Source: Macrostomum lignano (taxonomy: Eukaryota). From it: a stretch of DNA of 64,000 nt. The notes beneath the pieces were generated by a model, which was given only the letters and a program-made list of their open reading frames with translations, was not told the DNA's origin and ran no database searches. The DNA is taken from the NCBI GenBank assembly GCA_002269645.1, contig NIVC01000491.1, forward strand, positions 1-64,000, in the 5' to 3' direction. The stretch's first letter is position 1. The number at the start of each line of letters is the position of its first letter. The position numbers were made by a program, and so were the translations under genes. Below, one piece after another: positions 1-43,916 of this stretch.

Positions 1-2894
1 CAAGCCTTAGAATATATTCAGTGGTTTAGCAGTTCAGCAGTTATTCGAAGTAATTGTGTAGAAAGCTTATAAGGAGGGTGGAGAGCAGCTTTATAATAAT
101 TGCGTCTTAAGCATTGACTTTCTCCCCAATGAGTCTGGCACCACAAATCGTCATTGATAACTTGCATGTCTAACATGCCCCAGGACTACTAAAACACTGT
201 CATGGATCGGTAGTAAACAGCTGCAAATATTAATTTGTTTAAATAGATGTTTTTAGAAGCAAAGTTGCATTGTTAAAGTCTGCTTTAGCTGATAGCACCG
301 ATTCCTTAACAGGCTTGTTTATCAGTTATTGAACTAATCCTCAGTATATGGCCGTAATCTGTAAGAGTTCTGTAGTAGTCTTAAGCAGTTTTTTCACCTA
401 TTATTTTGACATAAAACAACTTCAAAAGGTTTTATTTCTAACAATTGTGACAGGTCTCTACGTCTTTTCCTAACGATGCCACCAATTTTTGTGGGTCTTT
501 CCTTTCCTAAGAAATTATTCCACAGCTATCACCAATAGTGACAGCTAGGTGTTCTGGTTCTCTCTTTATAATCCCTCAGCTGATATCAATTTGTTATTGG
601 ACCGGTGGGGGGGGTCTTAGCTTAGGATTGTGGGAAAGAATTCTATTTCTAATCTGATTCGAGTGTACTTTATTGATACTCTAGTAGCGTTATTACAGAA
701 TGTCTTACAGGGAGGCAGCACGCCTGATAGACTGGGAGTCTAGGGGATAGGCAAAACGCCTGGTAGACAGTAAGTTTAGGGAGATAGGCGAACGCTTAAT
801 GGACAGTACGTTCTAAAAACTACGCCTAAATCGGACAATACGCCCTTGAGGTTGGAAGAAGGCAGAATGCTGTACTGGGCACTGGGCAGCACGCTCTTGG
901 GAAGAGAGAGAGAGAGAGACAACACGCCTTATTGAACAGCACTGTTGTACCTTGGGAGAAAGAGGCAAAATCTTCCCAAGTAAGTGATAATGACAAATAT
1001 GCTATTTTTAGAACAAAAATATCAGACACTCGGATCGAGGCAAGTATTAGGCAAGAGCCCAGGAGCAAGAAGTTGGTCTTTCACTTGTGTTTTTCGTCGG
1101 TATATTTAATAAGAAAATGAAGATGGCGGTTTCTTTAAAACAAACTACAGTATTTATACGTGTCTTTTAAATACAATAGGTGCAAAATATCAGTTTTTAT
1201 CAGTGCGCTAATAAAATATGGTTAGAAAATATATTTTTTCAAGGGATAGAAAATAATGCTAACCACCTATATAATCACCTAATCACCTAGTAATCATAGT
1301 AATCACCAGAGATCCAAAGCCACTCTGAGTCTAAGGACCTCGATGACAACATGTACTTTTAAAATTTCACCGATGTTTAGCCGACGTAAAATGACGTTAT
1401 CCGTCGATGTAACGTGAGAGTGCATTTTTATACTCTCGGATTGTTTACAGTCTAGTCGGATTGCTGTACGGTGTGACGTTGCTAGTTTAAAGTGGTCCCG
1501 CAAAAGGGCCGTTGGACTACAAATTTCCTTACAATTTCTCATTTAATATTCTCCAATCCTGTATTCTCACGTTTACTTGTAGTAGCGCCAACGAATCTGT
1601 ATCAATTGCTAAATCACTCCGTACTTTGTAAGCCTTGTGTACGGCTGTAGGGTCTCGCGCGATCGATAATTTCTGTTTCTTGTTTTTTCCTCGACAGCCA
1701 ATGATAACTCTCCGCATATATTATGTTAACCCTCCTGCGCTCCTTTATTAACCCGCCTAGCGGCGGCTGGGGTTTTTTCACTCCTTCGCCACTTTCGCTC
1801 TTTCGCTCTCTCGTTCTCTCGTCTCGTGCCTCCTTATCTCTCGCCACGGCTCCACTCCGTCTGGGCCAGACTGTCTACGCACTCTTGCTACACTGTGTAC
1901 TGCCACGGGCCGACGCCCAATCTCGCCGCTTTGTTTGTTTGCCTACTTGTTACTCACAGCCATCACTTGCTACTCGGCTCCATCCCAATTATCATCATCT
2001 ACTCAACTTCCATCTATAGACTAGATTACATCAACCCATTGTTGCAGCCGCCAGTGCCCCATAACGTCATAAGCTTCTGTATTAATATTAACATTGATAA
2101 TTATAAACCAGTTGGCGTCTTTTGTTATCTACCGCCATTGCCAAGTGCTACCGCTACAAAATCTACTCTGCCATTGTTGAGTTCACCATCCTTTTTGGGA
2201 CTAATAACGTCAGCACTCTCGTCAAACGCCCTTTTGAGGCTATAGCCACTACTACGCCAATAACGTGACACGGTATAATGAAATTTGGGATATTGCCTCG
2301 CAAAGTAGCGGCCTAACTAATTCAGAACAAATGTCAGGTATGATCATAGCTATTGGTTTTACTCGGTAGTTCACGCACTTCACGCTCGCACTCGTAATAT
2401 AGTTTTATGCTTATTTCTCTTAGATAAGAAGGTGGATAGATCTAAAGATAGTTACCGCGAATTTAAAATAGTTTTACATGTATACGTACAAAAACACCGC
2501 TTTTAAGGCTTTGAACTTTCCGTAACAATGTCCACCAAGCTTGTGTGGTTTTTAATCCGATTCTTCTTATTTTTCTTCCTAGATTCGTCTCCTAAATCCA
2601 ATGGCATCACATTAATTTCGGATTATTCAGTGTTCGAGTGCTGTTGATTGCGACAGCAAAAAAAATTTGTCTGGCTCTCTGACCCTCTTGGTAATCTCTA
2701 AATTTGACAAGAGCAAATCTAATAATTTGTTATTAGAAATGAGAGCATTTCTCTAAGCACTACGATCGTAGCATAGAACTCAATTTTAAGTACTCGTAAT
2801 CGACCATTTCCTGAAAAATCTCAGCACTTGAGACTGTCTAAGTGCTAATAATTAATTCGTGCTAAGTACTTTGAGCTTAATTCTAAATTGCAGA

Positions 2895-3440
2895 ATGGGC
2901 AATACTGGAAGCAAACTGAGCAACAATACTGATGAGCATTGGAGCGTAGCTGCAGAATACAAGGTCGTTGGATGGAGCGCTGGCGATGGCATCATTCATG
3001 TGGACCCTTGGAACTCAACACATTATGATTTCAAGGGTTTTCCTGTTAACATCTATTTTAAACACAAGACACACAGTTTATCAGATACGATTAGTGACTC
3101 AGATATGAAATCATGGTGCAACGGTATCAGAAACAAGGACTGGAAGCTGCATTCACCATCAGAAGGCATCATCCATCTGGAATATAATGGAGGATATGTT
3201 GCAAACTACAAATACGAAACCAGATCGATGTTCGAGGCGAGAATGCACAGAGAACGAGAGCAGAGAATGGAGAGAGAGCGCAGAGGACAAGAGCAGAGAA
3301 TGGAGAGAGAGCGCCGAGGACAAGAGCAGAGAATGGAGAGAGAGCGCAGAGGACAAGAGCAGAGAATGGAGAGAGAGCGCAGAGAAAAAGAGCAGAGAAT
3401 GGAGAGAGAGCGCAGAGAAAAAGAGCAGAGAATGGAGAGA
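2895..3440 (+). CDS. N-terminal segment of SecA-like gene: MGxxxSK motif, ~105-aa globular domain, start of E/R-rich coiled coil
   Basis: ATG at 2895 (MGNTGSK), preceded by an acceptor-like ttctaaattgcag. The frame is lost at an extra GA in a GA run at ~3440. Confidence 0.7.
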
Positions 3441-6400
3441 GAGAGCGCCGAGAAAAAGAGCAGAGAATGGAGAGAGAGCGCAGAGAAAAAGTTCAGAGAA
3501 TGCAAGGGGCGCTACAGCAGCTGAAGCAGGGTGACAGAGAGCAGTCACTTTTGATCAAAGGAGGGCGGAACAGCAGATGGCTCGACAAAGTGCGATGCAA
3601 ACTGAAAACATACAAAAGTGGAAAAGCTTGAATGCTGAGCGAGACAGGGCTTTGGTGAACTTCAACCATAAAACTAAAGATTTCAGCAGAAGATGCGAGG
3701 CGACGAGGCAAGAGAGATCGGCCAAACACGAGGCGAGTAAAAGGCAAACTGAGAAAGATCGAGCAGAACACTTTGCCAGACTGCAGAAGCAGGCAAGAGA
3801 CAGAACAGAAAGCGAACAGCTATCTTTGGCTGATGAACAGGAGCAGGCAAATGCTATTCGCAAACAGAGACACGATGAGTTTCATCGTCAAAAATTAAAA
3901 GTCACCTCAGAAACTAGCGAAAAATTTAGCAGTCTCAACCAGGAAGCTCAGGAAACAAGAGCTCGTTTGAGAGCTCAGTTTGAAGAGAGAAAAAGTACTT
4001 TTCAGGAACAGATGAAGCGAAAGAAGGAGGAGATGCAGCAGCAAAGCTCGGAGATGCAAGACAGGCTGCAGTTGCAGAAAAATCAGCTGGAAATTGGCAA
4101 AGAAGAACTTCACCGCGAAATGGCTGAAAGGGAGGCTGAGATTGCCCGAAAAATAGAAGAGCAGCGGCGGCATCGAGCGGAGAAGCAACGGGAGTCTGAG
4201 AACCTGAAGAAAACAGAGCAGTTCAAGCGACAAATATTGATAGAGCTGGAGAGAGAGAGAGCCAAATCTATGCGCAGACAATTTAAGAGTGTTAGCTACT
4301 CCATTCAGCACGTTCGTGGGAAGAGCGCCAAAGGCTATTCTAACCCTGCAGTAAGCGAAGCATCCGAAGTGATGCTCAGAGACCAGCTTGAAGAAAATGT
4401 TGAAGATGCTTTGACGAAATTTCTAGGCAGTCTGTCAGGTGCTATCGAGGATGATTCCAATCAGGAACTGTCAGTAGCAGCTAATGTCAAAACAATTTCT
4501 GCAAAGGACGCTTTAGATTTATTTAAGCGTGTCTGGAAATCAGAAGGTCATCCATTTGGAAAGCAGCCAACATCTAGCCAATTGTCTCTCCTACAATTAT
4601 TGGATGAAAAATTCGCTCAACAGTGTTTAGATGCGGCTAACAAAGTTTTCCGAGAGATCTGCTTTCCGAGTTTAGAACTCGACTTGGTCAGCTATGGTCT
4701 GCTGGTTTTTGTCCTGCACAGCGAAAAATCCCAAGATATCAAGCACGAAGAAGACTTCAGTGCTCTCCGTCAGCAACTCAGCGACACAAGAATTGCACTG
4801 GCGCATATGAGAAAGCTCACTAGTGAAACAGCCTATAATGAGCTCAGTCCTGTCACTGAAAGGCTGCTCCAGCTGCTAGTTGTGGCTGAAGATGTTGTGC
4901 GACTTTGGCCGATTCAACAAGACCCTGCTGCTGGCTTAAAGAGGCTCAGAGTCGTACTGGCAACGATGCTGAGGCATGCTGGTGTGTCGCAGTATTTGGA
5001 TGAAAAATCCAACACCGAATGTGTCGTAGAGCTCATAACATCGATGCAGCATTGGGACCCTGTTAGCATGCTCAAGCTGATGGAATTTATACATACAAGT
5101 TGCACTGAGCCCGATCAGGTGAGAGAATTCGTGAAGATGATGGTGTTGAGCCGCGGCGACCCCAGATCTCTTCCGAGTCCTCGCGAGGCGATTACGGAAA
5201 CTTATATTGCGAGCCTAAAAAAAGATCAAGCATCACAGAAAACACTTGACCAGCTTCTCGATGAACTGAAGAAGACAGGGCAGTTCGACGAGGGTCAACT
5301 TTCAGAACTTGCTGACGTAGTAAGAAAAGTTTTCACATATTTTGATTCGTCTGGGTTCGATAAAGCATTGCAGAAACTGAAAATATGGAAACGTGGTAAG
5401 GAATCGCCACTGCACAAAATTCTGATTGATCTCTGTAAGGCAGTGCTGAAATGCAAGGGATATCTCCCAAGACATACACAAGTATTCAGTACTGCAGCCC
5501 TCCTAAACGCTTTTAAAAACAAAACAAGTGGGCAAGTATTACAGATCCTGACTGGTGAAGGTAAATCCTGCATTGTCGCAATGTCTGCTGTAGGATTGGT
5601 GCGTCTTGGACAAAAGTCTGTTGATGTCGTGGCTCCGTCAGAAGTTTTGGCTGCGAGAGACTGTAAGGAATGGAAAGATTTCTATAAAATATGCGATGTT
5701 CGAGTTGACTGCAACATTGAGCACGAAAATCCTAAAAAATGCTATGAATCGTGCATAGTGTATGGCACAGTCTCTTCTTTCGCGGGCGACACATTGCGGC
5801 ATGAGTTCCAGTTCAAAGACATCCGCGGCTCACGAGGCTTTGATTCAATAATCGTGGATGAAGTTGACTCTCTGCTGCTGGACCAAGGTGTGCAGCTGAC
5901 ATATCTGGCTCAGGACGCAGGTGACATGAAAATGCTGGATCCAATTTTCGCTACTATCTTTAGAGCCACTATGGGCTGCCACGTTCTCAACACAGCGCAC
6001 GGAGGTGAGATGGTGGCAGAGCAACAAATGACTTTTCTCTACCTCATAAAAGAGTTCGTCTCGTCGGATGAAGAGTTCAGCACTTTGGTCGAGCAACTTG
6101 ATCTCAAACAGTTAATTAGTTCAGAGGAGAAACAGAGCTTCTTGGCTCAAAATGCCGAACCAGTGGATTTGTCAAACTTTGATATTAAAAGGACGATTCA
6201 GGTTCTTGAAGTTTCTGGAGAAGTTTTGCAAAATTTTCCATCGTATACAATTTATGCATTTAGAAATGCTGAAATCGAACCAGTGCGGCTTTGCCAAGAT
6301 AGCTCATTGGATCTTTTAGTCCAAGATGGTGGAGTCTGCAATTTGCTTTTTGAAAATATCGATGACTTCAAAACACGAAAGAAGGAAGATATCTGGTCGA

Positions 6401-9400
6401 GAATAGACTACAGTACAACAATACTAGACCCGAAAGACGACACCGAAAAGAAACATGAAGAGGCCCAGCTGCCCATTCCATCGCATTTAAAGCAGTTCAT
6501 AGATGACATGCTGGATGTCTGGATCAACAGTGCCCTCACTGCAGGAGCTCTGCAACCCGGTAGAGACTACCTGCTTCAGGGTGGGGACGCTGTTCCAGTA
6601 GACTACAAGCACACAGGAGTGGTGCAGGAGAACATGAGATGGAGCGATGGGCTGCAGCAGTTTCTGCAGTTAAAACACAGCCTGCAAATGCGGCCTCTAG
6701 GATTGGAAACAAACTTCCTGTCAAACTTGGCCTTCTTCCGTCGATATGGCAAATCCATGTTCGGTGTGTCTGGAACTCTCGGAGAAGAGCATGAGAAAAA
6801 GTTCATGCGGGAAACTTACAAAGTGCAACTGAACTACATTCCTCCGTACAGGGAGCGCCGGCTTGTGGAGAACCCGGGCATTGTGGCAGAAACCAAGTCA
6901 GAGTGCATCACGAAAATTTGCCAACTAGTTACACAGGAGAGAAATCGGCCCAGCTTGATCGTGTGCGAGGATATCAACAGTGCCGACCTCATTTTCGAAG
7001 AGGTGGCTCGCCGTTGTCAAGGAGTCAAGACAAAAAAGTACGTCAAGAATGAGGACACAAAAGATGAACTTCAGGTGGGTCCCGGTGATGTTATTGTGGC
7101 CACGAATCTGGCAGGCAGGGGCACGGATGTGAAAGTGAGTGACGACGCGGAGACAGCGGGAGGTCTACACGTTCTCGTCACATTCCTGCCCTGAATCAGC
7201 GCGTTGAGGAGCAAGTGTTCGGCCGCAGTGGTCGCAAGGGCCAGCGGGGTTCAGCGACTTTGCTGCTAAGCAGAGAGGGCCTCAGTGCCTGCTTTTCAGA
7301 CTGTGACTCTGTCGAAGAAATGAAGCAGGTGAGACGAGAGGCCAGCTTGCAGGAACTGAAGAATCATGAGGAGTTCGCGCTGCCGGAAGTTGAGTTCAAG
7401 GAGAATCTTTTCAAGTGTATCAGTCATTTGCTATCGGAGTATTATCATCAGATAAAGAAACCTCCCAGCACTGGTACAGAGCTAGAAAAGCGTTGGTCAG
7501 AGACGGACCTAAAATTAAAAATGGATCATTTAAAAGAGATTTGGGGCATGCATCTCAAAAAAACACTCTGTCACATTACTGATTTCAGTAGAGAGAGAAC
7601 AGCTCAGTGCATTGGAGAAGTTGAGAAAATGTTCCAGGAAGCAAAATCTAATGTCGAATCCGAGTGTTCATTGAGTCCTTTTCAAGCACTGAAGTTTGCC
7701 GAGAAAAGTGTAAGGCACGAAGATTTCGAGCGGGCCATTGATCTTTACACAAAAGCTATAAATATGAACAGCTCATGGTCGTCTATCGCGTACTACAACA
7801 GAGCATACGCAAAAATAATGAAAGGCAACTGTGATATCAGAGAAGTGATGGATGACTTGAAAGACGCAAAAGCTCGGATTGCAGAAACTTGGCTGGCCCA
7901 TGCCACGTGGACGCAGCTGTACTCTGGCGCAAGAATCCAGCAGGAAAATGCAAGCGATAATGACTGTGAGGAGGAGGCTAAGAAGGAAACACCCAAAGAC
8001 CAAGCGAATAAACAAGTTAAGGAAGAAGCCAGACAAGATGTTCGAAGTGAAACTGCAAACCCTCAGTTCCGTCAATGCATGGCTCGAATAAGGATAATCA
8101 GCAATTATAAAACCCAAATAGAGAAATGCCTGGAAAAGCTGGAAGAGCACAGAAGAGCTGGTGATAAAATAATTGCTGTCAGCACTTGCATTAAGGAGAT
8201 TGAGAAGGAACCAGACAGCATTACACTCGACGAGCTCAAGTCTCTGTACCATCTGGGTCATGTAAGATTTTTTGATGTACAAAAGAAGCCTTCATATACA
8301 TTAGCGATTGCTGTGGCGATTTTCGGTGCTTTTGAGATTGCACTTGGCAGCGCGCTGTGCTACTGTGGTCAGGTGAATGTCGGAAATTATTTTATCAATG
8401 AAGGCATTAATGATATAATGGCAGGTGCGATGGGAATGATTCAGGGTGATTTTAATTTAAAAGCCTGGCTAAAAAGTAAAGCCATCAATATTGGTGTCAG
8501 CCTACTGACTTTTGGATTTAGAAAAGTAGCCAACTATCTTAAGTCTTCGGGAAAATTCGCATCCGTTGCGCAAAAAGTTAACTCAGCTGGGAGTACATTT
8601 TACACTAAAGCCGCATCAGTACTGAACAAAGTGATTGGACAAAACGCTGTTAAGTTTATTAAGAACATAATGAGCAATCCAATTGTACAGAAAGTGACCG
8701 ATTACGCGATAAGTGTAGCTCAAAGGAAACTGCTCGATCAGTTAATTGAAAAGTTGAAGCAGGACGTCCAAAGTGACGTTAAAGAGAAGTGCGCCTCTGA
8801 GGCTGAAAGTGGAAAACTTCATGACATTGTTCTCCGACTGACTGCTCCTCTCTGCTTAGTAAAAGACCAGGAGACGAGTAAAGTCGATTTATATGATTTT
8901 TCCACTCTACCTCATTCTCAAAGCAATAATATTTTACAGGCTCTTACAACTATAGCACACGAAGCAACAGATGAATTAATGTCCGATGTAACAAATACGG
9001 CCAAAGTAATTGAAGCAATTAATTCACGATTGACTGTACTAAAAGACGAGTTCTCGCAACTCTTCAAAGGTATTCTGTCTTTTGTAAGACTGGCATCAGT
9101 GGCAGTGGATTCGGCAGCAATAGCACAGCATGCAAAAACATTAAACAGCCTGGTAGGCAATACTGTCGATTGCATGTACAAATTATTGCTGAAGAGAGAA
9201 TGGAAAATAAAATTTGACCAGACCATTGACATCCGAAGCAAAAAGCTGCAGAGAAAAGAATGCATCAAACCACTCTGTAAAGCTACTGGAAAAGAGCTGG
9301 AGCAGCGCATCATTGAATGCGTCATTGTGATACTGGAAGAGCACATCCGTAAAAACCTAGATGGCATTGTGGAAAACAGCATTGAACAAGCAAAAAAATT

Positions 9401-11204
9401 CATTGGAAAAACATTTAAAACCGCGCATAAAGAAAATACAGCTAATAAAAAGATACCATCCATCAAAAATAAAAATATTGAAGAATCCGAAAAAGCCGGA
9501 ATAAAGAAATTCATGAAGAAGACTAAAGTCACTGCTACAGACTCCGGTGTGGAGCTAGCTAATGCAGACACCAAACTAGCGGTCAGGACTGGCGACTCTG
9601 GAGTGAGTGTGGCCGTTCAGCACAAAGACATGGCTCTCGGCGTGTCTCACGGATCGGACGGTTCTACAGAAGTGGCCGCCAGCAAAGGCGACAGCAAACT
9701 AGCGGTCAAGGCTGGCGACTCTGGAGTGAGTGTGGCCGCTCAGCACAAAGACATCGCTCTCGGCGTGTCTCACGGATCGGACGGTTCTACAGAAGTGGCC
9801 GCGAGCAAAAGCGACAGCAAACTAGCGGTCAAGGCTGGCGACTCTGGAGTGAGTGTGGCCGCTCAGCACAAAGACATCGCTCTCGGCGTGTCTCACGGAT
9901 CGGACGGTTCTACAGAAGTGGCCGCCAGCAAAGGCGACAGCAAACTAGCGGTCAAGGCTGGCGACTCTGGAGTGAGTGTGGCCGCTCAGCACAAAGACAT
10001 GGCTCTCGGCGTGTCTCACGGATCGGACAGTTCTACAGAAGTGGCCGCGAGCAAGGGCGACAGCAAACTAGTGGTCAAGGCTGGCGACTCTGGAGTGAGT
10101 GTGGCCGCTCAGCACAAAGACATGGCTCTCGGCGTGTCTCACGGATCGGACAGTTCTACAGAAGTGGCCGCGAGCAAGGGCGACAGCAAACTAGCGGTCA
10201 GGACTGGTGACTCTGGAGTGAGTGTGGCCGCTCAGCACAAAGACATCGCTCTCGGCGTGTCTCACGGATCGGACAGTTCTACAGAAGTGGCCGCGAGCAA
10301 GGGCGACAGCAAACTAGCGGTCAAGGCTGGCGACTCTGGAGTGAGTGTGGCCGCTCAGCACAAAGACATGGCTCTCGGCGTGTCTCACGGATCGGACGGT
10401 TCTACAGAAGTGGCCGCGAGCAAGGGCGACAGCAAACTAGCGGTCAAGGCTGGCGACTCTGGAGTGAGTGTGGCCGCTCAGCACAAAGACATCGCTCTCG
10501 GCGTGTCTCACGGATCGGACAGTTCTACAGAAGTGGCCGCGAGCAAGGGCGACAGCAAACTAGCGGTCAGGACTGGTGACTCTGGAGTGAGTGTGGCCGC
10601 TCAGCACAAAGACATCGCTCTCGGCGTGTCTCACGGATCGGACAGTTCTACAGAAGTGGCCGCGAGCAAGGGCGACAGCAAACTAGCGGTCAAGGCTGGC
10701 GACTCTGGAGTGAGTGTGGCCGCTCAGCACAAAGACATGGCTCTCGGCGTGTCTCACGGATCGGACGGTTCTACAGAAGTAGCCGCGAGCAAGGGCGACA
10801 GCAAACTAGCGGTCAAGGCTGGCGACTCTGGAGTGAGTGTGGCCGCTCAGCACAAAGACATGGCTCTCGGCGTGTCTCACGGATCGGACGGTTCTACAGA
10901 AGTGGCCGCCAGCAAAGGCGACAGCAAACTAGCGGTCAAGGCTGGCGACTCTGGAGTGAGTGTGGCCGCTCAGCACAAAGACATCGCTCTCGGCGTGTCT
11001 CACGGATCGGACGGTTCTACAGAAGTGGCCGCCAGCAAAGGCGACAGCAAACTAGCGGTCAAGGCTGGCGACTCTGGAGTGAGTGTGGCCGCTCAGCACA
11101 AAGACATCGCTCTCGGCGTGTCTCACGGATCGGACAGTTCTACAGAAGTGGCCGCCAGCAAGGGCGACAGCAAACTAGCGGTCAAGGCTGGTGAATCTCT
11201 ATAA
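2895..11204 (+). CDS. Giant SecA-like ATPase gene (reconstructed ~2,770 aa), interrupted by about three small indels
   Basis: Three consecutive ORFs join into one protein if indels at ~3440, ~3535 and ~7190 are corrected. SecA motifs occur in order: QILTGEGKS, VAPSEVLAARD, IVYGTVSSFAGDTLR, IIVDEVDSLLLD, RWSDGLQQFL, GVSGT, VATNLAGRGTD, GGLHV, then QRVEEQVFGRSGRKG in the -1 frame. Confidence 0.85.
3250..3495 (+). repeat. 33-bp coding tandem repeat (EQRMERERRGQ/EK), ~7 copies
   Basis: Unit gagcagagaatggagagagagcgcagagga(c/a)aa repeated. Confidence 0.9.
3535..7191 (+). CDS. Middle segment of SecA-like gene: coiled coil, helical region, SecA DEAD-like and helicase-C domains
   Basis: ORF 3577-7194 extends upstream as AVTFDQRRAEQQMARQ. 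It has the Walker A-like TGEGKS and DEVD motifs and ends at ...VTFLP-TGA in the middle of a conserved SecA motif. Confidence 0.9.
7191..11204 (+). CDS. C-terminal segment of SecA-like gene: motif VI, TPR, hydrophobic segment, 41-aa repeats
   Basis: The frame from 7191 reads LNQRVEEQVFGRSGRKGQRG, equivalent to SecA RRIDNQLRGRSGRQG. TPR-like FERAIDLYTKAINMN...AYYNRAYAKI follows. Stop TAA at 11202-11204. Confidence 0.85.
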   Translation: MNQRVEEQVFGRSGRKGQRGSATLLLSREGLSACFSDCDSVEEMKQVRREASLQELKNHEEFALPEVEFKENLFKCISHLLSEYYHQIKKPPSTGTELEKRWSETDLKLKMDHLKEIWGMHLKKTLCHITDFSRERTAQCIGEVEKMFQEAKSNVESECSLSPFQALKFAEKSVRHEDFERAIDLYTKAINMNSSWSSIAYYNRAYAKIMKGNCDIREVMDDLKDAKARIAETWLAHATWTQLYSGARIQQENASDNDCEEEAKKETPKDQANKQVKEEARQDVRSETANPQFRQCMARIRIISNYKTQIEKCLEKLEEHRRAGDKIIAVSTCIKEIEKEPDSITLDELKSLYHLGHVRFFDVQKKPSYTLAIAVAIFGAFEIALGSALCYCGQVNVGNYFINEGINDIMAGAMGMIQGDFNLKAWLKSKAINIGVSLLTFGFRKVANYLKSSGKFASVAQKVNSAGSTFYTKAASVLNKVIGQNAVKFIKNIMSNPIVQKVTDYAISVAQRKLLDQLIEKLKQDVQSDVKEKCASEAESGKLHDIVLRLTAPLCLVKDQETSKVDLYDFSTLPHSQSNNILQALTTIAHEATDELMSDVTNTAKVIEAINSRLTVLKDEFSQLFKGILSFVRLASVAVDSAAIAQHAKTLNSLVGNTVDCMYKLLLKREWKIKFDQTIDIRSKKLQRKECIKPLCKATGKELEQRIIECVIVILEEHIRKNLDGIVENSIEQAKKFIGKTFKTAHKENTANKKIPSIKNKNIEESEKAGIKKFMKKTKVTATDSGVELANADTKLAVRTGDSGVSVAVQHKDMALGVSHGSDGSTEVAASKGDSKLAVKAGDSGVSVAAQHKDIALGVSHGSDGSTEVAASKSDSKLAVKAGDSGVSVAAQHKDIALGVSHGSDGSTEVAASKGDSKLAVKAGDSGVSVAAQHKDMALGVSHGSDSSTEVAASKGDSKLVVKAGDSGVSVAAQHKDMALGVSHGSDSSTEVAASKGDSKLAVRTGDSGVSVAAQHKDIALGVSHGSDSSTEVAASKGDSKLAVKAGDSGVSVAAQHKDMALGVSHGSDGSTEVAASKGDSKLAVKAGDSGVSVAAQHKDIALGVSHGSDSSTEVAASKGDSKLAVRTGDSGVSVAAQHKDIALGVSHGSDSSTEVAASKGDSKLAVKAGDSGVSVAAQHKDMALGVSHGSDGSTEVAASKGDSKLAVKAGDSGVSVAAQHKDMALGVSHGSDGSTEVAASKGDSKLAVKAGDSGVSVAAQHKDIALGVSHGSDGSTEVAASKGDSKLAVKAGDSGVSVAAQHKDIALGVSHGSDSSTEVAASKGDSKLAVKAGESL
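9570..11195 (+). repeat. 123-bp coding tandem repeat, 13 full copies plus a partial (41 aa each)
   Basis: aaactagc recurs at 9573, 9696 and onwards. Unit DSKLAVKAGDSGVSVAAQHKD(M/I)ALGVSHGSD(G/S)STEVAASKG. Confidence 0.97.
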
Positions 11205-13310
11205 GGACTACCATTTTGACGTGTAATGACGGTAATATTTTGGCTATACGATTTAATCGAAAAGGACATTTTTCAGTGACGTCCTTTGACTTCCGTGTGG
11301 TTGAATACTTTTGCGGACTTCAGAGTGTCGTTGTCTAAGCGTTCGTTTGAAATGCAGTGTAGATGAAAAAAAGTGTTGAAATTAGTATTTATAGTTTCTA
11401 GTATAGCAAGTAAATCATTTAGGTCATTTTATCCACCTACATGTGCTTGTATCGTTTGAATTAAAAACTTTTACAAGAATACAAGTACCCACTAAATTGA
11501 TGCAGCTTCGTTTAGGAGTTATTTGGCATTGATTTGGGGCTACTAGTTTTTATTTTATTTATAAAATAATATTAACTATTCGCATTGTAATCGTGTAATT
11601 CGTGGTTTTTCTATGGGTAAATTATGGATTTTCTATGGGTAAATTATGGATTTTCTATGGGTAAATTACCTTTTGGAGGAATGCAGCGACAGGTACATGT
11701 CGCTAACTTTTTATGCTATCTGCTAATAACATTTTGAGCTAAAGCTTTCCCTAAATTGCCTGACGTCAAAGTATGCAAATGAGTAAGCTTAATGATCTAT
11801 AGTTAGTGGAGCGAATAATTGTGAGCAAAAACGAGAACCCTGAGCCCTTTTCGGCTAAATTTTAAAATTATTATGATCATTGTATTGTTGGACAAATTTT
11901 AGTGAAAGCACTTCTGCTCATTTTGCATGTACATATATGTGAATGTACGACTCATATCGCACATATCCAGAGAATTTGGAATATTGCTAATGGTGAGTAA
12001 TTCAGTTGAAGATAATGAACTGCTTTGCCTATTTCTTTACTATTTCTGGTTTAACATTGTTAATTTTTTAAATGGCTTTAAAATCATTTGATTTTAAACA
12101 CACTACTACATGTATATGTTACTGTACCTTCGTAGCTTTTTTGTCGAACGTATATCGAACGCACCAAAAGCCGAATTACAATCTTTATTTTATTTTAAGA
12201 GGAGTATATAGCTCGTATGTATTAAATAAATTATCGGAAAAAGTCTGAGATCTGATGTGAACAGCAAATTTACTGATGATTATGTACATAGGCTACACTC
12301 GGCGACTTTAAATAAAGGCTCATTCCCATTGCAATCAAATTCAACCAACCAAATAGTACGATTGATGTAACCGCCCTTGTCGCCTGTCCACTCCTATTGA
12401 GAGACGAACGCTTGGCTAGAGGGGGCAATGACCGTAGGCTGCCTATGACCGGGCAATGACCTGACGGACCTCCAGCACCAGACTGTCCCGCCCACATGAT
12501 TGATAGCTTTGGTAGCGCTTCGTGACCAGAGGGCCAAGGACCCACATGGACCCCACCTGTAGCCAAGGTGCAATAGTTGGTCACTCGGTCATAGTATGAC
12601 CGAGTGGCTGCCACCACTCTATGTGACCTGGCGCACCTGGATCTTTCTACCAGACCTCTCGAGGCTAGAGCCCCGCCTGGATTGGTTACCAGGGGATTTA
12701 GGCTAACAGGGGAGACGCATGCAGCCGAGTACAGGGACTCTGCTTGGGGCATGATCGGGAACTCTGGGCTCAATCCTGGAGGATTTCTCAGCAGGGGATC
12801 CTTTGTGGCTGTGAGCGAGGCTGACTTGCGACTTTGATTACTAAGAGTAGCATGAGGCGAACATGTACTGTCTCTAGTTTAGATTGCTCAGGGCGAAGGG
12901 ACGCGTTAGCATGGGGTTGCAACCTTCCTACTGCCATTCTGTGCCAAGACTCGCTAATCCCTCTACTGCACGCACACGCGGCCCCGCAGCACGCACTCAC
13001 AGGCGGGCTTTGCACGGGGAGAGGCCATTAGCTTACCCAAACTTCCCTATGCTTTGCCACCCCGGGAGAAAGGCTTAGCAAGCCATGAGTTAAATGATGG
13101 TGAAAGATGGAATAATGATGAAGTTAGTTAATAGTTAATAATTAGGCCCTTAGGCGAATAATCAGGCAATTAGGCGGCTTCACTATTGAGTAAAATACAG
13201 CAAGAGATACGGTATCACAATTGGCTCAGCTCTCTAATCAGACAATGGAAAATAGGCAAACCCCGGATAAGCAAAGGCAATTAGGGCACAAATTAGTAAC
13301 AGGAACTTAC

Positions 13311-16792: not shown

Positions 16793-17491
16793 GTAAGTTA
16801 TCCATAAAAGTCTTACAGCCATTTTTATTGTTTAATCCTACTATTTACTGAAGCAAGGTCTAGGTCTAGGCTAGGGTCTATATCCTATATACTAAAAATG
16901 AAAATCTTGCTTGCTTGCTTGCTTGCTTGCAATCGATTAGAGAAAAAATGGCTTAACCGATTTTCATGAGACTTGCACTGTTTGATCAGAAATTTTCCCG
17001 TGACGGTACATGCATCTTGGCTAAGAAATTGCTCCATGTTAAAGGGATTAAATATTCGAAAAACATGCTTTTTTGCAAAGGTCAAGCAAACTTTTCGACT
17101 TGAAATGCATTGTAAGAATGCTAGAGAAAAAAACTGACTGGTTGAATTCTGATTCTGAAATAGATTGCATCATAACTGAATTGTAACTCTGACTTGAATT
17201 GAAAATGCAGTGTGGAAGCGTAGCACCAGACTTGATTTAAATTGCGTAACCATATTGTTAACTGATACTGACTGACTGAGAAATTGATTATGTCATAACT
17301 GCCTCGTGTGATTTACTCCATGCTTGGAGTTTTGAAACTTATAATTATAAGTGCTAAAATTCATATTATCAAAACGATGAGAGCTAGCCTAGAGGTAAAC
17401 AGACTGACTGCTAAATGCAGGGACGATGGTTCGAATTTTTAGAGAGTGGAATTTTTTTAATTAAAGCTTTTTAACACCAAGAAGAAAACTA

Positions 17492-18300
17492 AAAAATCAT
17501 AGAAGCGTCATGTAAAAAATCATAGAAGCATCATGTAAAAAATCATAGAAGCGTCATGTAAAAAATCATGGAAGCATCATGAAAAAATCATAGAAGCATC
17601 ATGTAAAAATCATAGAAGCGTCCTGCAGAAATCGTAGAAGCATCATGTAAAAATCATAGAAGCGTCATGTAAACAATCATAGAAGCGTCATGTAAAAAAT
17701 CATAGAAGCGTCATGTAAACAATCATAGAAGCGTCATGCAAAAAATCATAGAAGTGTCATGTAAAAGATCATGGAAGCGTCATGAAAAAATCATGGAAGC
17801 GTCATGTAAAAATCATAGAAGTGTCATGTAAAAAATCATGGAAGCGTCATGTAAAAATCATAGAAGCGTCATGTAAAAAATCATAGAAGCGTCATGTAAA
17901 CAATCATAGAAGCGTCCTGCAGATATCGTAGAAGCGTCATGAAATAATCATAGAAGCGTCATGTAAAAAGCATAGAAGCGTCATGTAAAAAATCATGGAA
18001 GCGTCATGTAAACAATCATAGTAGCGTCATGTAAAAATCATAGAAGTGTCATGAAAAAATCATAGAAGCGTCATGAAAAAAACATAGAAATGTCATGTAA
18101 AAATCATAGAATCGTCATATAAAAAGCATAGAAGCATCATGTAAACAATCATAGAAGCGTCATATAAAAAGCATAGAAGCGGCATGAAAAAATCATGGAA
18201 GCGTCATGAAAAAATCATAGAAGCGTCATGTAAAAAGCATAGAAGCGTCATGTAAACAATCATAGAAGCGTCATGAAAAAATCATAGAAGCCTCATTTAA
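17492..18300. repeat. ~21-23-bp minisatellite inside Helitron copy 1 (repeated at 19943-20751)
   Basis: Unit aaaaatcatagaagcgtcatgt. Confidence 0.95.
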
Positions 18301-19172
18301 AAACTAATGAAAGTGTCATTTAAAAAATTAAGAAGCATCATGGAAGAATAAAAGAAGTGTAATGTAAAAATCAAAAGAAGCGTCATGTCAGACATGAAGG
18401 ATGTCATGTAAAAATGAAATGCAGCTATAATGCTGTGCTGGGAAGAAAAACTGAGACGTAAAGGCTCTCAGAGAATAACTGAGATTACGAGGGGGGGTTG
18501 TTTCTGGGATCTCAAAGCAAAAGTCAGAAGCTACTTCAAAGTTCATGTACTTTACTCAATTTTTTATTACATTCTTTGTTGGCTCGCCATGGGGGGTGCT
18601 GATAGAAGAAGAGTCATGTAAAAAATAAAAGTAGCACTATGTATACATAAAAGACAAGTCATGTCAAAGTTAAAAGATTCATTTGGGAATTGCTACGATG
18701 TCAAAGCTTGGTGGAAATCGTTATAGTGCTGTGATTCTTAAAGAAGGAATCACTAAAATGTCAAGGCTTAGGGGAGAAGAATTGCTGAGATTTCAAGGCT
18801 TTAGGTTGGGTTAAAGTTAGGTTTAGGTCAGGTGTGGGTTGAGGGTTATATTTTATCGGGTTTCAAGGTTAACAGTGGATTTTTTAGATTTCAAGGTTTA
18901 TGGGGGCCATCGCTGACATGTCAAGGCTTACGGACAGGGGGGGGGAATAGCTGAGATGTCAAGGCTCACGGGGGTATAAATGAGATTTCAAGGCTAAAGT
19001 CAGAAGCTACATGTAGTTTATTGAAAACTTTTTATTACATTATTTGATGCCTCCTCAGGCGAGGGATTGCTGATAAAAAAAGCGTTATGTAAAAAATAAA
19101 AGAAGCTTATCGCTATAATGCTGTAGTAGTGCTATAATGACTCTTAGAGAGAATTACTGAAATTTCAATGCT

Positions 19173-19333: not shown

Positions 19334-21749
19334 TCCTATATACTAAAAATGAAAATCTTGCTTGCTTGCTTGCTTGCTTGCAATCGATTAGAGAAAAAAT
19401 GGCTTAACCGATTTTCATGAGACTTGCACTGTTTGATCAGAAATTTTCCCGTGACGGTACATGCATCTTGGCTAAGAAATTGCTCCATGTTAAAGGGATT
19501 AAATATTCGAAAAACATGCTTTTTTGCAAAGGTCAAGCAAACTTTTCGACTTGAAATGCATTGTAAGAATGCTAGAGAAAAAAACTGACTGGTTGAATTC
19601 TGATTCTGAAATAGATTGCATCATAACTGAATTGTAACTCTGACTTGAATTGAAAATGCAGTGTGGAAGCGTAGCACCAGACTTGATTTAAATTGCGTAA
19701 CCATATTGTTAACTGATACTGACTGACTGAGAAATTGATTATGTCATAACTGCCTCGTGTGATTTACTCCATGCTTGGAGTTTTGAAACTTATAATTATA
19801 AGTGCTAAAATTCATATTATCAAAACGATGAGAGCTAGCCTAGAGGTAAACAGACTGACTGCTAAATGCAGGGACGATGGTTCGAATTTTTAGAGAGTGG
19901 AATTTTTTTAATTAAAGCTTTTTAACACCAAGAAGAAAACTAAAAAATCATAGAAGCGTCATGTAAAAAATCATAGAAGCATCATGTAAAAAATCATAGA
20001 AGCGTCATGTAAAAAATCATGGAAGCATCATGAAAAAATCATAGAAGCATCATGTAAAAATCATAGAAGCGTCCTGCAGAAATCGTAGAAGCATCATGTA
20101 AAAATCATAGAAGCGTCATGTAAACAATCATAGAAGCGTCATGTAAAAAATCATAGAAGCGTCATGTAAACAATCATAGAAGCGTCATGCAAAAAATCAT
20201 AGAAGTGTCATGTAAAAGATCATGGAAGCGTCATGAAAAAATCATGGAAGCGTCATGTAAAAATCATAGAAGTGTCATGTAAAAAATCATGGAAGCGTCA
20301 TGTAAAAATCATAGAAGCGTCATGTAAAAAATCATAGAAGCGTCATGTAAACAATCATAGAAGCGTCCTGCAGATATCGTAGAAGCGTCATGAAATAATC
20401 ATAGAAGCGTCATGTAAAAAGCATAGAAGCGTCATGTAAAAAATCATGGAAGCGTCATGTAAACAATCATAGTAGCGTCATGTAAAAATCATAGAAGTGT
20501 CATGAAAAAATCATAGAAGCGTCATGAAAAAAACATAGAAATGTCATGTAAAAATCATAGAATCGTCATATAAAAAGCATAGAAGCATCATGTAAACAAT
20601 CATAGAAGCGTCATATAAAAAGCATAGAAGCGGCATGAAAAAATCATGGAAGCGTCATGAAAAAATCATAGAAGCGTCATGTAAAAAGCATAGAAGCGTC
20701 ATGTAAACAATCATAGAAGCGTCATGAAAAAATCATAGAAGCCTCATTTAAAAACTAATGAAAGTGTCATTTAAAAAATTAAGAAGCATCATGGAAGAAT
20801 AAAAGAAGTGTAATGTAAAAATCAAAAGAAGCGTCATGTCAGACATGAAGGATGTCATGTAAAAATGAAATGCAGCTATAATGCTGTGCTGGGAAGAAAA
20901 ACTGAGACGTAAAGGCTCTCAGAGAATAACTGAGATTACGAGGGGGGGGTTGTTTCTGGGATCTCAAAGCAAAAGTCAGAAGCTACTTCAAAGTTCATGT
21001 ACTTTACTCAATTTTTTATTACATTCTTTGTTGGCTCGCCATGGGGGTGCTGATAGAAGAAGAGTCATGTAAAAAATAAAAGTAGCACTATGTATACATA
21101 AAAGACAAGTCATGTCAAAGTTAAAAGATTCATTTGGGAATTGCTACGATGTCAAAGCTTGGTGGAAATCGTTATAGTGCTGTGATTCTTAAAGAAGGAA
21201 TCACTAAAATGTCAAGGCTTAGGGGAGAAGAATTGCTGAGATTTCAAGGCTTTAGGTTGGGTTAAAGTTAGGTTTAGGTCAGGTGTGGGTTGAGGGTTAT
21301 ATTTTATCGGGTTTCAAGGTTAACAGTGGATTTTTTAGATTTCAAGGTTTATGGGGGCCATCGCTGACATGTCAAGGCTTACGGACAGGGGGGGGGAATA
21401 GCTGAGATGTCAAGGCTCACGGGGGTATAAATGAGATTTCAAGGCTAAAGTCAGAAGCTACATGTAGTTTATTGAAAACTTTTTATTACATTATTTGATG
21501 CCTCCTCAGGCGAGGGATTGCTGATAAAAAAAGCGTTATGTAAAAAATAAAAGAAGCTTATCGCTATAATGCTGTAGTAGTGCTATAATGACTCTTAGAG
21601 AGAATTACTGAAATTTCAATGCTTTAGGGTTAGGTTAGGGTTAGGGTTAGGGTTAGGGTTAGAAGGTTGACAGATATTTTTAGATAAGCTTATTAAAAAA
21701 ATGTGTATAGCATTTCTTTGGCTCCCCAACGGGGGGCGTAGATTGCTAG
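19334..21749 (+). mobile_element. Non-autonomous Helitron, copy 2 (near-identical head-to-tail duplicate)
   Basis: Same termini at an offset of 2451 bp. The only differences I noticed are G-run lengths. Confidence 0.75.
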
Positions 21750-26411: not shown

Positions 26412-29400
26412 CAACAACAACAACAACAAAATACGCGGCCCCGCAAGCAAAGTCAGTTAGAGCAGGGCGCGTCAGATGGCGCGCCGCAGAGCCTGGGAGC
26501 GAACGAAATCCGCTCCGTTGGCAGTGTCGGGCGCCCCAGCGTCGCACAGCAGGCAGTCCACGTATCGACGGGTTCGGGCCTGACCCCGCCTGAACGGGCC
26601 CTGCAAGGTGAGCAGCAGGACGTCCTGAACGGGTTGGGGGCAGTAGCCCTCGCCCGGATCACGTGGCCCGCCAGTTGGAGTCGCCGTCGGCGCAGGATGG
26701 TGGACGGGCGCTGCAGCTTGGCCCGATCGTACAGGGCCTCGGTCCCGACGCTCTCGTCAGCTCGAAAGGCCGCACGGAGCAGCCCTGAGTGCGCCGAGTC
26801 CAGCTGCCGCTCCAGCGTAGCCGTCAGCGTCCACGTCTCGGCGTTGTAGAGCAGGACGGTTTCGACCACCGCCTGCCACAGCCGAGCCCTCTGGCGGTCG
26901 GGCAGCGCTTCGGACTGGAGGACGGCTCGGATCGAACGAAAGGCCGCCCAGGCAAGTCCTCTGCGCCGCCGGAGGTCTTCTTCCACGTGGGGCACCAGAC
27001 CGCCGAGGTAGGTGAACCGCTGGCAACGTGCGAGCCTGGTCGTCTGCCCGTCTGCGCCGCGGCATGTCAGGTCTGCTGGGATTTCGGCCGGCACAGTCAG
27101 CACCTCGGTCTTTAGCGTGTTGACAACCAGACCGACGCTCGATGCTACCTCGACCAACCTGTCGATCTGGCGCTGGGCGCCTCCAACAGACGAGGACAGG
27201 AGGGCGAGGTCGTCGGCGTAGCCAAGCACGCTTAGGCGCTTTTCGCCGTGGCGGCGACCGATGCGTCTGCGCAGCAGGAAGCCGTCATTAGCCGAGGGGA
27301 GTGCGGTCCGAAGCACCCAGTCCAGCAGCAGCACGAAGAGGAACGGCGCCAAGGTGTCTCCCTGCAGAACTCCTGATGAAGTGTCGAACAGGTCAGACAG
27401 GCCGTCCGCCGTCACCACAGCAGCTCGAGTATCGCAATACAGCGCCATGACAGCGTCGATTAGCTGCTGGGGCACCCGGTAGGCTCGAAGGACAAAGGGG
27501 AGAGCGGCTCTCAACACCGAGTCAAACGCCTTTCGGAAGTCAACGAAGACAATGATCAGCGTAGACTGGCGGATGCGCGCCTCCTCGATGACACGGCGGA
27601 GTGCGAGGATCTGTGTCACTGTACCGCGTTGCGGCCGGAATCCGTTCTGCTCGTACCGCAGGTACGGGTCCAGCACCGACTGCAGACGATCGAGCAGCAG
27701 CCGGTTGAAGAGCTTCGCGGTGCAGGACATCAGCGAGATCCCGCGGTGGTCTTCTTTCCGCGTTGTCCCTGCCTTCTTCGGGATTGGCACGATGTGCGCG
27801 ACGGTCCACTCGGTGGGCGCAGGAGCGCCGGCGAGCACGCGGTTCATGACGCCTGTGACCTGGGAGGCCACACAGCGGAGCCGCAGCGCTTCGACCGGGA
27901 CTTCGTCGGGGCCGAGCGCCTTGCCGCCTGATGTTTTCCGAGCGAACAGCACAACGTCCTCCGTGGTGACTGGTCTGGTGCAGAAGTCCTCCTCAGCTGG
28001 GAGCGGCGTGTCCAGTGGGAGCGCAAAGCTGGCGGGCAGCGGCGATGCGGGCGCGTTCACAATGCCGGCGAAGAAGTCGCGCAATTCATTCCTGCGCTCC
28101 TCCGGAGTGTCGCCGGCCAGATTCAGCGCCACGCGCTTTTTGCGCCCCGTCAGAGTCCGGACGGCCGTCCACACTGCGCGGCTCTTCACGTCGGGGCCGG
28201 CTGCAGTGATGGACCTAATGGCGTCGTCGACAGCGGCCTGCTGCCGCTCGTCAAGAAGGCGCTCAAATGCGTCTTCAGCTTCGCCTGTGGGCCTCCGGTT
28301 TCTGCGGAGTCGCTCGATGTTGAGCCGCGCCTGCCTGATGGCGGGGTCGCTCTGCCAGGCAGGCAACAATTTTTGCGCTGGCCGCATCAGCGGGACCGTC
28401 TGCTCTGCAGCGGCTCTAACGGCGGTGCTGATGTCGGAATACTCCGCCTCGCGCTGGTCTCCAAGCGAGCCGACGAAGGCACCCGCAAATTGACGCTTCA
28501 CACGGGTGTCCAACAGTGCACGATAGTAGCGCCGTGGCCGCTGCTTTGGCGGTCGGTAGAGCTGATCGCGGAGCCGCAAGTCGCAGATCAGGAGTCGGTG
28601 GTCTGACCGGAGAGCCAGCGGAGCCATGGTGTCGCAGTTGGTGACGCGGCGGCGCTCGCGAGTGCGAACCAGCGCATGATCGAGTTGCGCCAGTCTCCTC
28701 GTGGCATTCCGCCCGCGTGCGTTCCGCCGCCTTCTCTTGCAGCCCGCAAAGGTGACCAGGCGGGCAGGGGGCTTGCGGAACTGGGTGTTCGCGGACACCA
28801 GGTCCAGCCGGTCAAGCAGGTCCTCCAGCGCATCGGTGTTGGCGTTCTCGCGTCCCGCGACAAAGGGCGAGCGCTCGGACCTCCGCGGGACTGCGTTCAG
28901 GTCTCCGAGCACTGCCAGCGTGTCGCGGTTTGGCACCTCTTCCAGCTGCCCAGCCAGGAAGTCGAAGAAGGCACGCGCCTCCTCGGGGTGAGCAGCGGTG
29001 GGTGCATACGCGCAGAACAGCCGGATGCAGCGGGCGCGCAGTCGCAGGTCGACCCGCATCAGTCGCGAAGACAGCGAGATGCAGTGCATGCTCTGCTGGA
29101 GGCGCGGTCCGATCAGTACGCCGACACCGCCCCGGCCGCGGTTGTCTGCCGACGTGTACAGGAGGCTCCAGCCGGCTCCGAGGTCCTCAGACTGGAGCCC
29201 CGGCTCGGCCACGATAGAGACCTCCTGCAGTGAGACGAGGTCCAGCTGTAGGTCGTGGGCCAGCTGGACAAGGATGGTGCGACGCCAGGGGGCCTTCAGA
29301 GTTCGGCAGTTCATCGTGCCGAGCCTGAGGCGGCCACCTGGTACAGCTGGGGCCAGATGGAGGTTGGCCTCATGGTCCCCGGCGCCACCCGGCGGATCCA

Positions 29401-29641
29401 TAGTTGAGGTAGCAGGGACTGGGGAAAACAGGCGCCTGGCCGCGCCACGGAGTCGCCCTCGCCGGTTGCGCTCGCGCCGCCGCTCAGTGCGACGTTGCGC
29501 GCTGCGCTGACCTCTGCGAGTCCCTGCTGTGCTGAGCTTTGCTGCCGCAGCCGAAGCGCGGCCGTCCGAGCCAACCGAGGTCATCCGCGGCCTGATGATC
29601 TGGCCGCGATGCCAGGAGGTGTCAGCACGATTTGCACGGGT
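26412..29641 (-). mobile_element. RTE-type non-LTR retrotransposon (LINE), essentially full length
   Basis: Single ORF with APE endonuclease and RT, GC-rich 5' UTR, short 3' UTR ending in (TTG)n on the element strand. Confidence 0.9.
26472..29401 (-). CDS. APE endonuclease + reverse transcriptase ORF of the LINE (1-nt frameshift near 26651)
   Basis: GTMNCRTL, SLQEV, CAYAPT, VLGDLNA and QLDHAL (APE); HRGISLMS, QNGFRP, FVDFRKAFDSV, GVLQGDTLAPFLF, YADDL and FTYLG (RT). The natural C-terminus ...EGYCPQPVQDVLLL...ALRRAI* is in the shifted frame. Confidence 0.92.

Positions 29642-42068: not shown

Positions 42069-43916
<1,848 letters not shown>

Follow-up and report, generated by a model that had tools for sequence, protein, structure and literature searches.

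A giant flatworm protein with a SecA-like motor and a putative membrane anchor belongs to a family apparently distinct from the SecA translocases

To our knowledge, SecA is a protein that textbooks restrict to bacteria and plastids. Here we describe a gene of the flatworm Macrostomum lignano that encodes a giant protein with a SecA-type motor, one of a family of such proteins; the gene is nuclear, in an animal, and its motor does not belong to the canonical Sec pathway. It occupies positions 2895-11204 of the forward strand of a stretch of 64,000 nucleotides (positions 1 to 64,000 of contig NIVC01000491.1, assembly GCA_002269645.1), the whole of which is called the window in what follows. Related systems have been described in bacteria. 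In giant proteins of the Omnitrophota, of the archaeovorin and dockerin types, a SecA_DEAD domain and a preprotein-binding domain are found without scaffold or wing, beside membrane helices, and the authors suggested, without experiments, that these embedded SecA-like domains lead to self-export (bioRxiv 10.1101/2023.11.21.568195). A comparable self-export idea has been put forward for giant actinobacterial toxins (PMC8195603). SecA-like domains are also known from effectors of Amoebophilus (PMC3482391), and the 'SecA DEAD-like' protein lfa2470 of Legionella fallonii is listed among eukaryote-like proteins (PMC4256840). Of the animal family, the only trace found is the KEGG label 'bacterial secretion system: SECA' in a gene-set enrichment table of a fish genome paper (PMC10298005); no paper describing the animal family, its hydrophobic segment or its myristoylation-type start was found in the open-access literature.

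The locus is one intronless nuclear gene. Its coding sequence is spread over three open reading frames (ORFs), at 2859-3524, 3577-7194 and 7215-11204, which after three minimal indel corrections yield a single protein of 2,769 aa, with no internal stop and with the stop codon at 11202-11204; these and all further features of the gene lie on the forward strand. A word-index protein search retrieved a 2,019-aa M. lignano hypothetical protein, BOX15_Mlig033771g1 (hereafter P0001), which is colinear with the reconstructed protein at 92-97% identity and continuous through all three junctions. Since P0001 is unbroken where the ORFs meet, their joining is not arbitrary, and the single protein of about 2,770 aa proposed in a preliminary description of this DNA can be upheld. 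We consider the identity and architecture of the protein, as set out below, to be almost certain. When compared with some 170 homologues fetched from the databases, the protein is conserved between roughly aa 750 and aa 2000, a stretch that takes in the motor and the region that follows it.

The SecA-like motor (5413-7304), recognized from Pfam, PDB and an AlphaFold2 model, is made up of nucleotide-binding domain 1 (NBD1), a PPXD-like insertion and NBD2. The motor had been described beforehand as complete, and it does prove SecA-like both in sequence and in predicted fold, with all five of the motifs then named present in the translation: the Walker A motif TGEGKS at residue 886 (5551-5568), DEVD at residue 988 (5857-5868), RWSDGL at residue 1248 (6637-6654), motif V, ATNLAGRGTD, at residue 1402 (7099-7128) and motif VI, GRSGRKG, at residue 1443 (7221-7241). 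The PPXD-like insertion of ~235 aa (about 5908-6615) appears as an alpha/beta insertion in the model. In Pfam, SecA_DEAD is matched at E = 4e-24, with weaker matches to P-loop_SecA and Helicase_C and a partial one to SecA_PP_bind; the last reaches only E = 0.0085 in the window protein, over profile positions 61-109, but is better matched by homologues, to ~2e-8. The best sequence matches in the PDB are all SecA (E = 2.6e-27).

The structural comparison points the same way. The core model was built from the intact segment aa 743-1932 of P0001 together with 59 homologues, and has a mean predicted local distance difference test score (pLDDT) of 79.9 and a predicted template modelling score (pTM) of 0.76. 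Searched against the PDB with Foldseek, it finds SecA structures first (E = 4e-26), with template modelling (TM) scores, normalised to SecA, of 0.54-0.60 for SecY-bound SecA, while the next fold class, that of DinG, UvrB, XPD and Hna, follows at only ~1e-5. Among 60 family members, the D-E-x-D of Walker B and several residues of motifs V and VI are invariant, and the TGEGK of Walker A and most other motif positions are conserved in at least 90%. Because the catalytic motifs are invariant or conserved to this degree, the protein is expected to be an active ATPase.

To judge from its sequence, the window protein is nevertheless not an orthologue of the SecA translocase, and its family is distinct from SecA, SecA2 and plastid SecA, since it scores far below the curated cut-offs, groups in a clade of its own and shows no scaffold, wing or finger that can be detected from sequence. 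Among the curated NCBIfam models, PRK12904 gives 111.6 bits against a cut-off of 814, TIGR00963 gives 111.2 against 800 and the SecA2 models give 75-97 against 725-1100; over all SecA and SecA2 models the range is 75-112 bits, set against cut-offs of 725-1,493. Neither SecA_SW, which covers the scaffold, wing and two-helix finger, nor SEC-C is matched in Pfam. When the profile of the family's post-motor region is compared with that of canonical SecA, the two are homologous across motifs V and VI alone, over 85 columns, and the overall structural alignment to SecA is loose, at a root-mean-square deviation of 14-23 Å. By contrast, matches of the window protein to family members reach E-values down to 2e-145, or 1e-108 for the motor alone, as against 3e-17 for the best canonical SecA. 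In a crude neighbour-joining tree of 473 motor columns, without bootstrap, the midpoint root separates ten SecA, SecA2 and plastid SecA sequences from all family members, so that the protein stands outside canonical, accessory and plastid SecA rather than nesting among them. Nor did a SecY-like gene that might serve as a partner turn up in the survey of ORFs in the window, which was not a search aimed specifically at SecY.

Beyond the motor, the core that defines the family, at aa ~840-1880, continues with a helical region (7305-7679) that contains a long, scaffold-like helix, of 49 residues in the AlphaFold2 model (model positions 655-703). There follows a TPR-like motif (7680-7844; AIAYYNRAYA), seen as W-x-AIAYYNRA at aa 1631 and present also in the family consensus. 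The TPR of the preliminary description is thus retained as one such motif, its Pfam match, to TPR_BSK1_C, being below threshold and the model adding three short helices. A helical linker with a small beta-alpha-beta element (7845-8282; model helices 830-936, strands 940-978) leads to the Gly-rich hydrophobic segment (aa 1797-1880; 8283-8534). This segment is predicted to form three helices (model positions 983-1004, 1008-1031 and 1036-1053; block-mean pLDDT 81-92) and carries invariant Q, G, E-G-x-x-D and K residues. Its window sequence, …AFEIALGSAL…NEGINDIMAG…KSKAINIG…, aligns with a hydrophobic block conserved across the family, from fish, frog and mussel members to those of Tetrahymena and bacteria, so that the segment, as first described, is confirmed. 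With a Kyte-Doolittle value of 2.13 at residues 1803-1821, it contains the sole strongly membrane-like stretch in the protein. When isolated from three members and compared with Pfam, the segment matched no family, the best E-value being 0.12. In one subgroup (P0181, P0189, P0212, P0177, P0178, P0184, P0187 and P0182, metagenomic or fish-like) it has lost its hydrophobic pattern while the flanks still align; these proteins may represent a soluble sub-family.

The N-terminus reads MGNTGSK (aa 1-7, including the start codon; 2895-2915), as the preliminary description had noted with its MGxxxSK. With G2, S6 and K7, it is an N-myristoylation-type motif that fits the pattern G-{EDRKHPFYW}-x2-[STAGCN]-{P}. 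A start of this type is found in 30 of the 118 family proteins with at least 300 aa before the motor but in just 3 of the 145 without, and the proteins that have it come from the flatworm, mussel, fishes, gar, coelacanth and frogs. The earlier suggestion of an own membrane anchor is therefore strengthened on two counts, by a lipid-anchor-type start that recurs in several phyla and by a hydrophobic segment kept family-wide, including in Tetrahymena and one bacterial member. The start codon is directly preceded by …aaattgcag/A, which resembles a splice or trans-splice acceptor.

Aligned N-termini of frog, fish, coelacanth and mussel members have a common layout in which the MG start is followed by a small domain and then by a helix rich in E, R and K. 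In the window protein the small domain comprises aa 1-113 (2895-3233); it is lineage-variable, parallels the frog and fish members in layout and is matched by nothing in Pfam or the PDB. Many vertebrate and mussel members have a CxxC…CxxC in this domain and the flatworm does not. Homology with the corresponding domain of the frog protein P0074 was considered, on a phmmer E-value of 2.7e-7, and rejected, as BLASTP with composition correction was not significant; the layout alone is common to the two. The helical spacer that follows (aa 114-560; 3234-4575) is rich in E, R, Q and K, which make up 52% of residues 126-560, and holds two of the frame breaks together with a 33-bp repeat of 7.7 copies (3248-3502), an expansion specific to the window. 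It had been called a long coiled coil; the charged composition is clear, and the coiled coil itself is the weak point of that assignment. A helical and weakly conserved pre-motor region (aa 561-839; 4576-5412) completes the part before the motor, homologue coverage climbing from about aa 650-800.

With the motor as query, an exhaustive HMMER scan retrieved 6,326 representative clusters at a threshold of E <= 1e-3, of which 1,193 pass E <= 1e-30. The best-scoring matches are mostly proteins of 1,000-4,400 aa with the motor in mid-protein, and family members are 27-34% identical to the window protein over a core of ~1,100 aa. Vertebrate members come from bichir, sturgeon, gar, many teleosts, coelacanth and frogs (Xenopus, Aquarana, Lithobates and Discoglossus), invertebrate ones from Mytilus, the crayfish Procambarus, bdelloid rotifers and a tardigrade, and there is a ciliate member in Tetrahymena. 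No amniote appears among the named matches except in one entry that also bears a fish label and is taken as contamination. Teleost entries are often named 'protein translocase subunit SecA-like', with often several per genome, and are often marked 'LOW QUALITY'; other members stand in the databases as 'uncharacterized protein LOC…'. Consecutive locus numbers on one contig, seen in Discoglossus, coelacanth and bichir, suggest tandem clusters of paralogues. The bichir gene spans only ~50 bp beyond its coding length, so that there too the family is essentially without introns.

Some members carry fusions: the tardigrade protein ends in a nuclease-type T5orf172/MUG113 domain, and P0076, from a contig of 540 kb, begins with an ApoL domain (E = 8e-17), to which the hydrophobic segment has no similarity. 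The database entries that go by the name 'protein translocase subunit SecA-like', hundreds in number, belong to the same family, and the protein is thus not unique to the window. What is already known is a near-identical paralogue, listed in GenBank as hypothetical, together with relatives, again in the hundreds, that bear automatic 'SecA-like' names; what is new is a SecA-type motor in a eukaryotic, apparently self-anchored architecture. The family is accordingly neither categorically new nor already explained.

Relatives were also sought in bacteria, in a survey of one genome per prokaryotic species. Matches extending well beyond the motor motifs come mostly from Coxiellaceae, Francisellaceae, Rickettsiales/Rickettsiaceae, Orientia, Cytophagales and Chlamydiales. 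Shorter ones, of ~65-150 residues at the end of the motor, come from Legionellales, Parachlamydiaceae, Midichloriaceae and metagenome-assembled genomes of Ca. Tisiphia. The relatives in the survey thus belong mostly to intracellular lineages, in keeping with the brief mentions of Amoebophilus and Legionella cited above; many other bacterial matches cover just ~70 residues around motifs V and VI. Several bacterial members, for example P0079, L003 and L004, also have the TPR-like motif and the hydrophobic segment. P0079, a Coxiellaceae protein, is fused to an OTU domain, and fusions to OTU, Peptidase_C48 (Ulp1) and RickCE domains are seen in one member each among giant proteins that are mostly metagenomic. 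The bacterial members are presumably delivered into host cells. No relative with the motif VI pattern was found in viral contigs.

Taken as a whole, the protein is probably a cytosolic, membrane-anchored and ATP-driven machine for handling polypeptides, with a likely part in host-pathogen or other conflict; as a specific mechanism, a polypeptide motor working at a membrane is plausible but falls short of probable. Since it has no signal peptide, the protein would be made in the cytosol. An N-terminal myristate and the hydrophobic segment would hold it at the cytosolic face of a membrane, where the SecA-like clamp, by binding and hydrolysing ATP, would grip and move, or unfold, a polypeptide. 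Its role would be in host-pathogen or other conflict, whether as host defence or as bacterial mimicry, and not in housekeeping secretion, because the family is expanded in particular lineages, varies at its ends, includes fusions to domains of pore-forming, nuclease and deubiquitinase type and is shared with intracellular bacteria.

Several points weigh against this picture. Sequence homology with SecA ends just past motif VI; a two-helix finger, and with it a SecA-style pushing mechanism, would be conjectural. Just one helix of the hydrophobic segment is clearly membrane-like by hydropathy, and N-myristoylation is predicted from sequence alone. The conflict role, although most likely, is drawn from phyletic pattern and domain fusions, and none of the three ORFs matched the PADLOC defence models. 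No functional study of the family was found in the open-access literature, where several apparent mentions of 'SecA' proved to be abbreviated species names or proteins of bacteria. Finally, the window copy has three frame breaks, of which that at 7191 lies outside any homopolymer, and this particular copy could be a very young pseudogene, a matter taken up below.

The same parts could be assembled into a bolder proposal, which we regard as doubtful: an autonomous SecA-type machine, present in animals and intracellular bacteria, that is anchored by N-myristate, dispenses with Sec61 and uses the Gly-rich segment as a conduit or insertion device for ATP-driven movement of a polypeptide into or across a target membrane. 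The target might be, for example, a pathogen-containing vacuole, and the polypeptide either the protein's own variable tail or a partner protein. If true, this would amount to an unrecognised eukaryotic system for protein translocation or membrane attack.

A narrower form of translocation, in which the motor threads the protein's own C-terminal part across the membrane that holds the hydrophobic segment, had been favoured in the preliminary description, with a cargo that would correspond to the C-terminal repeats. The order of the parts, motor then hydrophobic segment then long tail, invites such a reading, which is akin to the proposals cited above for bacterial giant proteins and actinobacterial toxins. 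The tail begins with a helical region (aa 1881-2212; 8535-9530), modelled at low confidence and partly common to coelacanth and crayfish members; P0035 and P0034 match the window protein as far as aa 2212 and 2261. It continues with 13.3 tandem copies of a 123-bp, 41-aa unit (9567-11198; 97% matched; consensus DSKLAVKAGDSGVSVAAQHKDIALGVSHGSDGSTEVAASKG), in agreement with the 13 repeats first counted. The units are near-identical, with a few conservative variants (I/M, G/S and KA/RT). A single-sequence AlphaFold2 model of the array is all-beta, with four strands per unit, at a low pLDDT of 61.5; the folds that it matches, without significance (E >= 0.13), are mostly those of open beta-helix proteins. 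That these weak matches include passengers of secreted beta-helix proteins would suit export of the array, but the low confidence of the model and the non-significance of its matches count against this.

More seriously for self-translocation, the tail is not conserved. No homologue of the 41-aa repeat was found among the ~170 family proteins, and at least three gene models (P0169, P0170 and P0070) are nearly tail-less, stopping about 15-40 residues past the hydrophobic segment. The same 123-bp array is present in L001, the locus that encodes P0001, in 57.2 copies (L001:16441-23463) and with several frameshifts. Since no homologue was found and the copy number is variable, the repeats are not a conserved cargo. 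The bacterial precedent, moreover, is itself just a hypothesis. Self-translocation of the beta-rich array is therefore possible but unsupported, and we think it unlikely.

The array was also considered as a WD40 propeller. This was suggested by a phmmer match to a repetitive WD40 protein, PDB entry 2ymu, with E = 6e-15, which however amounts to only 58 bits over 476 aa. The units lack W and lack the GH/WD pair, and the weak fold matches are to open beta-helices and not to propellers, so a WD40 propeller was ruled out; the match to 2ymu is best explained as an effect of the shared periodicity of 41 residues. The number of repeats differs more than four-fold between two copies of the gene that are otherwise 95-97% identical.

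Alternatively, the ATPase might act as a conformational switch, governing by nucleotide state how the Gly-rich segment is exposed and enters a target membrane, for instance that of a pathogen vacuole. The protein would then be likened to myristoylated IRG GTPases, of which Irga6 is N-myristoylated, or to ApoL-type proteins. The acidic and Gly residues that are invariant within the hydrophobic helices hint at a role beyond that of a passive anchor, one member has the N-terminal ApoL domain already mentioned, the MG start is common and the family is tandem-expanded, all of which would sit well with membrane attack. On the other hand, the hydrophobic segment resembles neither ApoL nor any pore-forming family in Pfam, the retained PPXD-like clamp points to the handling of polypeptides, and no expression data for infection or interferon were found. 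On balance membrane attack of this kind, and with it the likeness to IRG or ApoL proteins, seems to us improbable, and the polypeptide-handling machine remains our preferred reading.

The frame breaks raise a different question, whether the locus is dead or artefactual: a decaying pseudogene, a contaminant or a set of mis-joined ORFs. Three breaks in 8.3 kb, one of them outside a simple run, might suggest so. At the first, a (GA)n run that lies within a unit of the 33-bp tandem repeat has two surplus bases (3435-3436). At the second, one T is missing from a T-run (3549-3552), which by DNA alignment is T4 in the window and T5 in L001. At the third, at 7191/7192, one T is missing again, CC-CTG in the window aligning with CCTCTG in L001. 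The gene model of P0001 is a single exon on contig NIVC01002610.1 of the same assembly, GCA_002269645.1, and between its locus, L001, and the window there is synteny, with 95-97% DNA identity, flanks included. The window is thus a further copy of the L001 locus, either an allele or a duplicate; no second copy of the gene lies within the window itself.

L001 is intact at all three sites, its own several frame breaks sitting within its own repeat array, and it lacks the expansion of the 33-bp repeat. Because the sister copy is intact at these sites and broken elsewhere, in its own array, the three breaks are more likely assembly errors than decay. The window copy and L001 differ by a dS of 0.086, and their dN/dS is 0.33 for the gene as a whole and 0.18-0.24 for the motor and the part after it, which indicates purifying selection on the gene. 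No stop codons are left once the three indels are corrected. As for contamination, or a plastid-like contig, the flanks of the gene are those of repeat-rich animal DNA, with a retroelement of the long interspersed nuclear element (LINE) type, an RRM exon and satellites. These eukaryotic flanks are syntenic between the window and the published assembly, so that a contaminant or organellar origin is excluded. A dead or artefactual locus is accordingly very unlikely.

Activity on nucleic acids, the family having reverted to or kept the function of a superfamily 2 (SF2) helicase on RNA or DNA, would account for secondary Pfam matches to DEAD, ResIII and Helicase_C, for the second-tier fold matches to DinG, UvrB, XPD and Hna and for the nuclease-type end of the tardigrade member, but it is hardly credible when the SecA fold matches are better by ~20 orders of magnitude, when the SecA-specific insertion in NBD1 and the motif RWSDGLQQF are conserved and when the membrane features would have no obvious role.

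A few further observations concern the immediate and wider surroundings of the gene. Upstream, ~1.2 kb of DNA (window 1470-2667) corresponds to only ~240 bp in L001, an indel in the putative promoter region. Right after the stop codon, a 22-bp repeat of three copies (window 11603-11668) is kept in both copies of the gene, and downstream of the gene in L001 lies a short tract of TTAGGG, repeated 5.7 times (L001:24379-24412). Rfam gave no match over the whole window. An intact-looking ORF of a non-LTR retrotransposon, with Exo_endo_phos and RVT_1 domains, runs from 26456 to 29401 on the reverse strand and has 60% G+C against 33-49% around it; a 17-bp satellite of 81 copies at 99% identity (29643-31020) adjoins its 5' end and artificially lengthens the ORF to 1,506 aa.

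Two arrays of a 22-bp repeat (17490-18388 and 19941-20839), 2.45 kb apart and of 40 copies each, have identical statistics, which implies a recent segmental duplication. Exon-like pieces of a gene for an RRM-type RNA-binding protein, with a weak RRM_1 match, lie on the reverse strand at 54627-54830, 56600-56719, 46715-47203 and 53134-53400. Arrays of (ACAG)n, of (ATAG)n and of a 17-bp unit split these pieces, and Q/A-rich stretches of ORF nearby may belong to the same gene. Tandem arrays of very large size are found at 32068-35387 (35 bp, 95 copies), 35893-37130 (33 bp, 37 copies), 42069-43916 (ACAG, 463 copies), 49745-50601 (GATT, 217 copies) and 57921-59117 (22 bp, 59 copies), and give rise to long spurious ORFs on both strands.

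The significance of the window protein lies in its family. A large family of giant proteins, often tandem-expanded, in fishes, amphibians and many aquatic invertebrates is built around a SecA-derived motor, and the database label 'protein translocase subunit SecA' is a mislabel for it. That this family is shared with Rickettsiales, with bacteria of the Coxiella/Legionella type and with chlamydial bacteria points to a host-pathogen interface and to an exchange of genes between intracellular bacteria and their hosts. The conserved module offers experimental handles in Walker A, in the G2 myristoylation site and in the E-G-x-x-D segment, and tractable models are at hand in Macrostomum, by RNAi, in zebrafish and in Xenopus; their study could reveal a new ATP-driven membrane activity in animal cells.

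When compared with what has been described, the window protein is nearest to the SecA-like entries in the databases, which share its TPR-like motif and hydrophobic segment and often its MG start and charged helix, but differ in their C-terminal tails, in which no 41-aa repeats were found. The bacterial homologues have the same motor but, unlike the window protein, carry deubiquitinase or desumoylase domains of the OTU, Ulp1 or RickCE type; the Amoebophilus and Legionella proteins are likened to it here from their description in the literature. Also by description, the giant proteins of bacteria resemble it in combining SecA_DEAD with a preprotein-binding domain, to which the PPXD-like insertion would correspond here, without scaffold or wing. 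They are far larger, however, with many membrane helices and many enzymatic or adhesion domains, whereas the window protein has, by Pfam and hydropathy, one hydrophobic segment and no enzymatic domain besides the motor. With SecA and SecA2 it has in common two RecA-like nucleotide-binding domains with the same set of motifs, an insertion in NBD1 at the position of the PPXD and a long helix after NBD2; unlike SecA, it is a eukaryotic and, as predicted, cytosolic protein with a lipid-anchor motif and a hydrophobic segment of its own.

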